DNA of 64,000 nt, taken from positions 23,878-87,877 of the forward strand of contig NIVC01002952.1 of assembly GCA_002269645.1 (NCBI GenBank), in the 5' to 3' direction. The notes beneath the pieces were generated by a model, which ran no database searches, was not told the DNA's origin, and saw nothing but the letters and a program-made list of their open reading frames with translations. The translations under genes were made by a program, and so were the position numbers. The stretch is from Macrostomum lignano (lineage: Eukaryota). Shown here piece by piece: positions 17,422 through 19,218 of this stretch. Numbering within the stretch: the first letter of the stretch is position 1; every line of letters starts with the position of its first letter.

Positions 17422-18121
17422 ATGGCTGACCAGCTTACAGAGGACCAGATTGCCGAGTTCAAGGAGGCATTCAGCCTGTTCGATAAGGATGGAGACGGTT
17501 GCATCACCACCAAGGAGCTGGGCACCGTGATGCGCTCTCTGGGCCAGAACCCCACCGAGGCTGAGCTGCAGGTGAGAATTTTCCAATCTATGGAACTTAG
17601 TTAAGAAAGCATGCATACAAAATATAGAGCGAGCAGAATGGGTCCGTGTAGTGGTGCATGGAAAGGAATTTCCGGCGAAGTCGATTGTGTCCTGCTGCAT
17701 GTACACATGCGTCAGCCATTATCAGTGCATGTTAATCATGTTATTGTCAAGATTTAAGCGGACACAGCAGCAGATGTCTGGAATAATCTAGCCCCATGCA
17801 CCTCTTCCTGCACAATTGTAGGACATGATCAATGAGGTTGACCAGGATGGAAATGGCACAATCGACTTCCCGGAGTTCCTCACCATGATGGCGCGCAAGA
17901 TGAAGGACTCCGACAGCGAGGAGGAGATCCGGGAGGCGTTCCGCGTCTTCGACAAGGACGGCAACGGCTTCATCTCGGCTGCCGAGCTGCGCCACGTGAT
18001 GACCAATCTGGGCGAGAAACTCACGGACGAGGAAGTTGAAGAGATGATCCGCGAGGCTGATCTGGATGGCGACGGTCAGATCAACTACGAGGAGTTCGTC
18101 AAGATGATGACCAGCAAATAG
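17422..18121 (+). CDS. CaM: Calmodulin, 149 aa; exons 17422-17571 and 17822-18121, with a 250-nt phase-0 intron
   Basis: [17 protein letters not shown]...EAELQ|[12 protein letters not shown]...FVKMMTSK; GTGAG donor and TTGTAG acceptor; four canonical EF loops; AATAAA at 18250 and 18328. Confidence 0.97.
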
Positions 18122-18465
18122 ACTCGATCTATCGTGTCGTCCGCCATATCATCGCGCCCGAAAATGAACTAAAAAACTTGACATTTTTGTGCTATATATA
18201 AAATCTTTAAATTCTGTTTGCTGTACCAGATAATCCTGTTTTCCTAATCAATAAATTGCGTTTTGGCAGCCTTGACCCGCTTCTAATCTACTAATATCTT
18301 TAATAATTATAATATATCGATTGTTCCAATAAACATAAAATAGCCACAATTGACTGAATTGCGTCTTATCTAAATTCAGGCATATTGAGTTCAACGCTGA
18401 TTTCATATACACATTCCTGATGTATTAAATGTATATTAATTTATACAACGTAGTTTCTAGTGATA

Positions 18466-18670
18466 CAGGGGTCGGCAAAATTTTTACCTTAAGGGCCAGA
18501 TTAAGAATCTACGCTCGTAGCTCGTGGCTGGGGGGGCAGATAAGAGCGGAAACGAGAAGGAATACTGGGAGAGGAGAGAAGATGAGATGAGGTGTGGATG
18601 GAATGAGAGAGAGAGGAGATGAGAAGATAGGGATGAGGGAATAGAGAAGAGGGGAGAGAATAGATCTCCA
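18466..18670 (+). mobile_element. Truncated hAT-like MITE (CAGGGGTCGGCAAA) between the two calmodulin-type last exons
   Basis: The terminus and GA-rich body match the 14133 family. Confidence 0.55.
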
Positions 18671-18918
18671 TAGCCATTGTGTCAAAAGGACCCGAGGGCC
18701 CAATAGATAAAATGACCTATAGTTTCCCGATCCTGGGTACAATGCTACCAGTATTTCAATACATGCAGCTTTGATGTACGCTCCTGCACTGGTTGCATTA
18801 CTATAAGTAGCATGGAAGAGAAGGGGTGTGCACAATTAAGCCTACAGTATTAGGTGTATCGACAATAAAATTCATGCCAATAACACACTACTTTGCCATT
18901 CAATAAACCAAACAAAAG

Positions 18919-19218
18919 GAGTACATCGAAGAGATCGACTCCGAGCTGACTGGTGTACTCGAGCTCAACACATTCATGACGCTCATGGCCGAGAAGATGA
19001 AGCCCCGCGACACTGAAGAGGCCATCATCGAGGCGTTCCGCGTGTTCGACAAGCAGAACAGCGGCATGGTGTCGGCCTCCGAGCTGCGCAACCAGCTAAC
19101 TCAACTCGGAGAGCGACTCACAGACGAAGAGGTCGACGCGTTGATTAAAGAGGCCGACTGCGACGGGGAGGGCCAGATCCGGTACGAGGACTTTGTCCGG
19201 TCTATTATCAACCAATAG
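18919..19218 (+). CDS. Calmodulin-like terminal exon (99 aa, EF2-EF4, degenerate loops) with no exon 1 of its own; candidate alternative last exon of CaM
   Basis: AAG| then [49 protein letters not shown]...[20 protein letters not shown]. It is exactly 300 nt, phase 0, and colinear with CaM exon 2. Confidence 0.85.

Follow-up and report, generated by a model that had tools for sequence, protein, structure and literature searches.

Does a single calmodulin gene in the flatworm Macrostomum lignano encode two different proteins through a choice between two last exons? The question is raised by a stretch of 64,000 nucleotides of contig NIVC01002952.1 (positions 23,878 to 87,877, assembly GCA_002269645.1), which we call the window. 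On its + strand, the first exon of a calmodulin gene lies upstream of two homologous 300-nt last exons, here named 2a (proximal) and 2b (distal). Exon 1 followed by exon 2a spells a canonical calmodulin; exon 1 followed by exon 2b spells a chimera in which three of the four EF-hand loops are altered. Calmodulin is the textbook example of an invariant Ca2+ sensor, and animals normally make calmodulin-like proteins from separate genes. After weighing the available evidence, we think that the chimera, made by splicing exon 1 to exon 2b in cis, is probably a real and maintained product of this locus. All coordinates given below are positions in the 64-kb window, and L001 denotes the sister contig NIVC01004186.1.

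The two last exons have the same architecture. Each is 300 nt long and starts in phase 0, and they are colinear and can be aligned without a gap, with identity at 193 of 300 nucleotides and at 52 of the 99 encoded residues (52%). Their extents and splice sites (Table 1) are those proposed in a first-pass annotation of this DNA, as is the position of the two AATAAA signals behind exon 2a. Since exon 2b matches calmodulin exon 2 with an E value of ~1e-32 within the window, the homology between them is far beyond chance. Exon 2b begins 797 nt 3' of the exon 2a stop codon. When both proteins were compared with all six frames of the 64 kb by tblastn, a single exon-1 homologue was found, and a word-7 blastn search detected no remnant of either exon 1 or the intron in the spacer between 2a and 2b. 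The earlier view that no second exon 1 lies between the two last exons therefore stands, as far as homologues of exon 1 are concerned. The same annotation had placed a truncated miniature inverted-repeat transposable element (MITE) in this spacer, which we could not confirm, as neither a terminal inverted repeat nor another copy was found in the window. It had also named a short open reading frame (ORF) at 16932-17000 as a candidate alternative first exon. This ORF contains a CCAAT-box-like motif, GGCCAATCAG (16934-16943), and, judging from its letters, the stretch is more likely to be promoter than exon.

The donor of exon 1 matches the M. lignano motif GT[G/A]AG. Joining it to exon 2a gives a protein identical to human calmodulin at 139 of 149 residues, in which PROSITE PS00018 matches four of four loops; both the loops and the identity, which exceeds the ~90% to vertebrate calmodulin taken as a minimum, are those of a canonical calmodulin. 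One of the 10 differences from the human protein is residue 27 in EF-hand 1 (17500-17502), a Cys where calmodulins have Thr. Joining the same donor to exon 2b removes an intron of 1347 nt (17571 to 18919) that spans all of exon 2a. The mean intron length in M. lignano is 1.1-1.4 kb (PMC5730564), and an intron of this size is therefore ordinary.

Table 1. Features of the calmodulin locus, in window coordinates
Feature	Position	Strand	Remarks
TATA-like motifs (TATAAG, TATAAAAG)	17305..17329	+	~95-115 nt 5' of ATG; presumed shared promoter
Exon 1, coding part (shared)	17422..17571	+	50 aa, MADQLTEDQ...TEAELQ; canonical EF-hand 1; donor CAG|GTGAGA
Intron-1 arm of RNA duplex	17663..17692	+	Inverted copy of part of exon 2a; from complementarity and folding
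Exon 2a (proximal last exon)	17822..18121	+	Calmodulin residues 51-149 and stop; acceptor TTGTAG|
Exonic arm of RNA duplex	17854-17881	+	Encodes TIDFPEF of EF2
GTCAAG within exon 2a	18098..18103	+	Donor of the 241-aa and 506-aa models; C at +3, no fit to GT[G/A]AG
Poly(A) signals of exon 2a (two AATAAA)	18250, 18328 (18250..18333)	+	Both kept in L001
Acceptor region of exon 2b	18854..18918	+	63-nt AG-free zone; in-frame TAA 18904-18906; AATAAA 18902; acceptor AG 18917-18918
Exon 2b (distal last exon)	18919..19218	+	99 aa and stop; homologous to calmodulin 51-149; acceptor CAAAAG|
First internal in-frame ATG of exon 2b	18976..18978	+	Would start an 80-aa, C-lobe-only product if neither exon 1 nor a leader AUG preceded exon 2b

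Is exon 1 joined to exon 2b in real transcripts? The best indication comes from a public gene model. GenBank entry PAA48296.1 (BOX15_Mlig013024g1, 149 aa, ‘hypothetical protein’) equals the product of exon 1 and exon 2b, residue for residue. It is encoded on L001, whose identity to the window in this region is 96-99%, and its gene span there (10001-11764) aligns to the interval from the calmodulin ATG through the exon 2b stop codon. Given that a protein of 149 residues must be accommodated within this span, only the joining of exon 1 to exon 2b is possible. The Mlig_3_7 annotation combines RNA-seq reads, mapped with STAR and assembled by StringTie and TACO, with a Trinity assembly that was also mapped, and it includes no ab initio models (PMC5730564). 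Spliced-leader and poly(A) sites mapped by experiment served to cut the transcripts, in which TransDecoder then called ORFs (PMC5730564). An intron in a transcript-derived model of this kind needs split reads or a contig that spans it; therefore, the 17571^18919 junction is probably real RNA. The splice that the first-pass annotation had proposed on reading the DNA, with its 149-aa product, is thus matched exactly by a transcript-derived protein. A chimera created by de Bruijn assembly is unlikely because calmodulin coding sequence and exon 2b have no exact word in common longer than 14 nt.

Two UniProt models from the older ML2 assembly, both named ‘Calmodulin’, use exon 2b in another way. 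A0A1I8IYR6 (241 aa) and A0A1I8IZG5 (506 aa) share a join from an internal donor in exon 2a (18097|18098) to exon 2b, so that residues 1-142 of calmodulin would run directly into the distal exon. The agreement between the two models is a point in favor of the 241-aa protein being the real product of the locus. Yet their donor does not match the species motif at +3 (Table 1), the 506-aa sibling continues into 265 aa of junk, and a 241-aa product would carry an odd number of EF-hands, namely seven. Moreover, predictor fusions of tandem calmodulin genes are also found in Aplysia, Mytilus, and other animals. We regard the 241-aa protein as a very improbable product, and we rejected both models as probable gene-predictor fusions on account of the poor donor, the junk extension, and their likeness to the fusions in other animals.

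The transcript-derived gene model is public but has been uncharacterised since 2017. The name ‘Mlig013024’ was not found in main texts or in the M. lignano supplements searched, and literal full-text searches retrieved no published calmodulin gene with alternative coding exons, within one library and hence without amounting to proof. The earlier remark that no animal calmodulin gene is known to be built in this way agrees with these searches of published reports, but the gene model itself has been available since 2017.

We then considered what kind of protein the chimera would be. It is identical to human calmodulin at 100 of its 149 residues, and PS00018 matches EF1 only, in line with the normal EF1 and altered EF2-EF4 loops described before; by its sequence, this product would class as calmodulin-like, not as calmodulin. 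In the EF2 loop, the acidic ligand at position 12 is missing, and positions 3 and 4 are Glu and Leu. The EF3 loop has Gln at position 3, and positions 9 and 12 of the EF4 loop are Arg and Asp. From what is established about EF-hand chemistry, no Ca2+ binding is expected of EF2, and at best weak binding of EF3 and EF4. None of the four C-lobe methionines is retained, and the central linker gains a proline.

The hydrophobic core positions of the N-lobe at which EF2 packs against EF1 all stay hydrophobic in exon 2b. An AlphaFold model of the chimera, used for secondary structure only, has the normal eight helices and four loop strands; its alignment is shallow and its mean predicted local distance difference test score (pLDDT) is 66. 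The chimeric N-lobe is the best-scored part, with a pLDDT of 71-75. Both the preserved core and the modeled N-lobe would fit an EF2 that still pairs with EF1, hence the use of exon 1. Exon 2b is closest in sequence to calmodulin, and its best 60 matches among solved structures are all calmodulins. We also considered a myosin-light-chain (or troponin C) identity for exon 2b and rejected it, exon 2b being nearer calmodulin by sequence. The roles suggested in the first-pass annotation (a Ca2+-desensitised, dominant-negative, or light-chain form) are hypotheses, and a role for the chimera as an apo-calmodulin-like or light-chain-like subunit is speculative.

Several observations weigh against a functional chimera. 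The case for the junction relies on how the GenBank annotation was made, and the copies that we compared are only 1-4% diverged, so that the test for selection amounts to three substitutions. Signals at the distal exon are poor: its acceptor is weak and A-rich, as had been noted earlier (pyrimidine fraction, 0.45 versus 0.68 for exon 2a), and neither AATAAA nor ATTAAA occurs within ~500 nt 3' of its stop codon, the first canonical hexamers being at 19716 and 19877. About 30% of M. lignano genes are trans-spliced (PMC8629364), and the terminal ATG of the spliced leader would be in frame at 18919. In addition, the canonical calmodulin of the locus (17422-18121; identical in L001) is absent from a collection of 15 billion proteins in which the chimera is present, and the junction of exon 1 to exon 2a occurs only in predicted models. 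The absence of the canonical protein from the collection indicates that the public annotation of the locus is incomplete; possibly, a filter applied before submission removed transcripts that overlap repeat annotations.

Finally, protein and metagenome searches did not find an orthologue of exon 2b in other species. A word-indexed search with exon 2b returned only the M. lignano protein, all other matches being at most 61% identical, which is the level of calmodulin. No match above ~51% came from an exhaustive HMMER search of 1.84 billion representatives, in which multi-EF-hand repeat proteins ranked highest, and a metagenome scan gave nothing above 47%. A search with the junction-spanning peptide retrieved only short calmodulin fragments; PAA48296.1 itself was unlisted, so this search is uninformative either way. 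The absence of orthologues is weak evidence because the searches missed PAA48296.1 or the UniProt fusions that contain exon 2b.

Some of these observations would be expected if a calmodulin gene had been duplicated and exon 2b were the decaying relic of the duplicate, the junction with exon 1 representing low-level splicing noise that was caught by transcript assembly and that leads to no functional protein. The weak acceptor, the lack of a nearby canonical poly(A) signal, the degeneration of three of four EF loops, and the failure to find an orthologue elsewhere all speak for such a relic. Yet the reading frame of exon 2b is intact and free of indels despite 48% amino acid divergence from 2a, and the positions of the hydrophobic core and the helices are conserved. 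GC content at third codon positions (GC3) is retained at 0.80, next to 0.78 in exon 1 and 0.83 in exon 2a, amid a background of ~41% GC; the clean ORF with GC-rich codons that was first described here is therefore confirmed. A comparison of exon 2b in the window and in L001 shows three differences, each at a synonymous third position, and no non-synonymous one (proportion of synonymous differences [pS], 0.047; proportion of non-synonymous differences [pN], 0). This pS is near the 4% divergence of the intron, the spacer between 2a and 2b having diverged by 2.6%, and three random changes would all be synonymous with a chance of ~0.01. The two copies do not differ at either splice site, nor in the final 25 nt leading to the exon 2b acceptor. 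Taken as a comparison of sequences, these results provide modest support for purifying selection on exon 2b rather than decay, modest because three substitutions are all that it comprises. We consider the relic explanation improbable.

A different alternative arises from the biology of M. lignano transcripts. Exon 2b could be a downstream, operon-like cistron: after cleavage at the calmodulin poly(A) site, read-through RNA would be trans-spliced at 18919, yielding a protein of 100 aa (a methionine plus exon 2b) or one of 80 aa from the ATG at 18976. This route may coexist with cis-splicing. The M. lignano leader, CGGTCTCTTACTGCGAAGACTCAATTTATTGCATG, is 35 nt long and ends in ATG (PMC8629364). 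About 15% of the genes of this species are in operons, for which a distance threshold of 1 kb applies, and 18% of operons begin with a gene that is not trans-spliced (PMC8629364). The exon 2b acceptor lies on the same strand 586-664 nt after the calmodulin poly(A) signals, within the operon distance. The leader ATG is in frame at 18919 because exon 2b has kept phase 0, and a leader-joined exon 2b would read ...CAATTTATTGCATG then GAGTACATCGAA. According to work attributed to Cheng et al. in 2006 (J Biol Chem 281:733), the AUG of the flatworm leader reportedly serves as an initiator.

The first-pass annotation had itself warned of a spliced leader, and this warning stands, since the leader makes for a serious rival; what speaks against it is the acceptor. 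The sequence ACAAAAG lacks the trans-splice motif [T/C]TNCAG, which is an enrichment (9551 of 21754 sites) and not a requirement. Furthermore, exon 1 stayed joined to exon 2b in an annotation whose pipeline cuts transcripts at leader peaks. In a 100-aa product, EF2 would be unpaired, which is structurally awkward, though its core residues are conserved as if they were paired. Overall, production of exon 2b as a separate cistron seems to us unlikely, if far from negligible.

How might a cell choose between the two acceptors? Part of exon 2a is present as an inverted copy in intron 1, and the two arms could form an RNA duplex around the proximal acceptor. The core of this duplex is 13 nt of perfect complementarity, a length reached by 3 of 500 dinucleotide shuffles of the region. 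As a whole, it comprises ~27 imperfect base pairs at -41.9 kcal/mol, compared with a mean of -13.2 and a minimum of -27.5 for shuffled arms, and when 17572-17900 is folded, both the minimum-energy and the centroid structures contain it (z = -3.65). Its loop of ~165 nt holds the branch region, the pyrimidine tract, and the acceptor of exon 2a. The arms are unchanged in L001; all intron differences, including a 25-nt indel, are located in the loop beside the 5' arm. Because one of its arms is constrained coding sequence, the duplex does not belong with the transposon hairpins that are common elsewhere in the window. It is plausible that it tunes the use of the proximal acceptor, and hence the ratio of 2a to 2b, which would make it a candidate switch. 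Alternatively, it may serve as an ADAR-type editing duplex.

We do not claim a docking/selector type of competition, given that the intronic arm would pair with the region 5' of exon 2b at merely -16.5 to -18.6 kcal/mol and that this region is not among its best partners. Directly 5' of the second AATAAA, the sequence TCGATTGTTCCA (18317-18328) is complementary to the exon 2a core at 17854-17865 (12 nt, 92%), and may offer this core a competing partner at the poly(A) site. The reading frame of exon 2b opens just 12 nt before the exon, and no AG other than that of the acceptor follows the in-frame TAA of Table 1; together with the 63-nt AG-free zone, this speaks for a maintained exon. An AATAAA at 18902-18907 lies 11 nt 5' of this AG, and another is present at 18864; both are kept in both copies. 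Use of the former as a distal calmodulin poly(A) signal would bring it into direct competition with the exon 2b acceptor.

Our favored explanation, cis-splicing of exon 1 to exon 2b, can be put together as follows. The locus would be one transcription unit under the calmodulin promoter. The donor of exon 1 (17571|17572) would usually be joined to the strong proximal acceptor of exon 2a, and the transcript would end at the AATAAA at 18250 or 18328, giving canonical calmodulin. When this acceptor is skipped together with its poly(A) sites, the donor would instead be joined to the weak distal acceptor (18918|18919), resulting in the 149-aa calmodulin-like protein, which would keep EF1 of calmodulin and have EF2-EF4 loops devoid of canonical ligands. 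The ~27-bp duplex may adjust how often the proximal acceptor is skipped. Exon 2b would have originated from an old tandem duplication of exon 2, or from a duplication of the whole gene followed by loss of its exon 1. A hybrid of cis- and trans-splicing is also conceivable: the same distal acceptor would be used in cis for the 149-aa chimera and in trans, with the leader, for a 100-aa protein that lacks EF1, so that a single unit would yield three proteins in a balance set by the duplex. We find this hybrid doubtful; if true, it would be a cross between an alternative-last-exon gene and an operon.

The surroundings of the gene are rich in repeats. A GA-rich array (14245-15065, 24-nt unit) and a CT-rich array (15724-16215, units of 26, 55, and 110 nt) occur back to back in the region 1.2-3 kb 5' of the calmodulin start, and a shorter GA-rich patch (18530-18665) is located between exons 2a and 2b. 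The window also contains more than 20 minisatellite arrays, one of which (30266-32120) consists of a 33-mer repeated 56 times. Local inverted repeats of 60-160 nt, 80-100% complementary, are found at 5316-5804, 7832-7987, 33021-33407, 44167-44868, and 52245-52405; these are probably MITE-like or hairpin elements. Rfam gave no match in the window. Upstream of calmodulin, at a distance of ~4 kb, a single-exon ORF on the + strand (12199-13242, 347 aa) encodes an HMG-box protein (Pfam PF00505, E value 1.8e-24) that is also called on the sister contig. Downstream, a convergent gene with a JmjC/JHD domain occupies ~22000-27900 on the - strand (14566-20588 in L001, where it encodes 618 aa). Its span is full of minisatellites with periods of 16, 22, 4, 31, 28, 47, and 39 nt, whose copy numbers differ between the window and L001.

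If cis-splicing to exon 2b is confirmed, the output of both proteins would be tied to one promoter and one 5' untranslated region (UTR). EF1 would be kept, and three EF-hands as well as the target surface of the C-lobe would be replaced. How much Ca2+-responsive calmodulin is made relative to the Ca2+-poor form would then depend on the choice of splice site and poly(A) site. The chimera would also be a natural experiment on how far the N-lobe tolerates a dead partner EF-hand. Transgenesis, RNA interference, and in situ methods are available for M. lignano, making the switch, including the duplex, directly testable. For annotation, the locus exposes a gap: the public set has the chimera and two fused models, and not the canonical calmodulin.

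How does this arrangement compare with known systems? Tandem duplicated exons that are alternatively spliced, as either mutually exclusive or terminal exons, are a well-known means of protein diversification (PMC9013439, PMC9741552). Like such exons, 2a and 2b have the same length and phase, one or the other would be joined to a common upstream exon, and the resulting isoforms would differ in one homologous segment. Unlike in the typical case, calmodulin would swap a last exon with its own stop codon and 3' end, and thereby two thirds of the protein and three of its four functional sites. At 52% identity, the calmodulin pair is also far more diverged than typical pairs of duplicated exons.

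Calmodulin-like proteins encoded by separate genes include vertebrate CALML3-6, Drosophila Androcam, and the trematode calmodulin-like proteins. The chimera resembles them in its four-EF-hand fold of ~149 aa, its partly degenerate loops, and the smaller number of methionines in its target-binding patches. Those genes have promoters and first exons of their own, whereas the N-terminal 50 aa, the 5' UTR, and the promoter of the chimera would be those of calmodulin. The myosin essential light chain genes, such as vertebrate MYL6 and Drosophila Mlc1, have alternative 3' exons. In these genes, too, the C terminus of an EF-hand protein is switched by an alternative 3' exon, and their Ca2+-insensitive sites have a parallel in those predicted for the chimera. 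In contrast, the light chain genes change few C-terminal residues, and exon 2b is nearest to calmodulin, not to a light chain.

With the spliced-leader operon genes of M. lignano (PMC8629364), exon 2b shares its strand, its position less than 1 kb after poly(A) signals, and a 3' splice site in phase with the leader ATG. It differs from them in that it lacks a trans-splice acceptor motif and in that the public transcript model joins it to exon 1 in cis. As regards the duplex, parallels exist in docking/selector systems (PMC6071210) and in intronic editing-complementary sequences for ADAR: in them, as here, a conserved intronic element is complementary to sequence at a regulated exon. Unlike in either of these systems, one arm of the calmodulin duplex lies inside a coding exon, and the competing pairing near exon 2b is weak. 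The mechanism itself, an alternative last exon pair derived from tandem duplication, is thus a known one. What is unusual here is the host gene and the scale, with two thirds of calmodulin being swapped behind the promoter and first exon of calmodulin itself.

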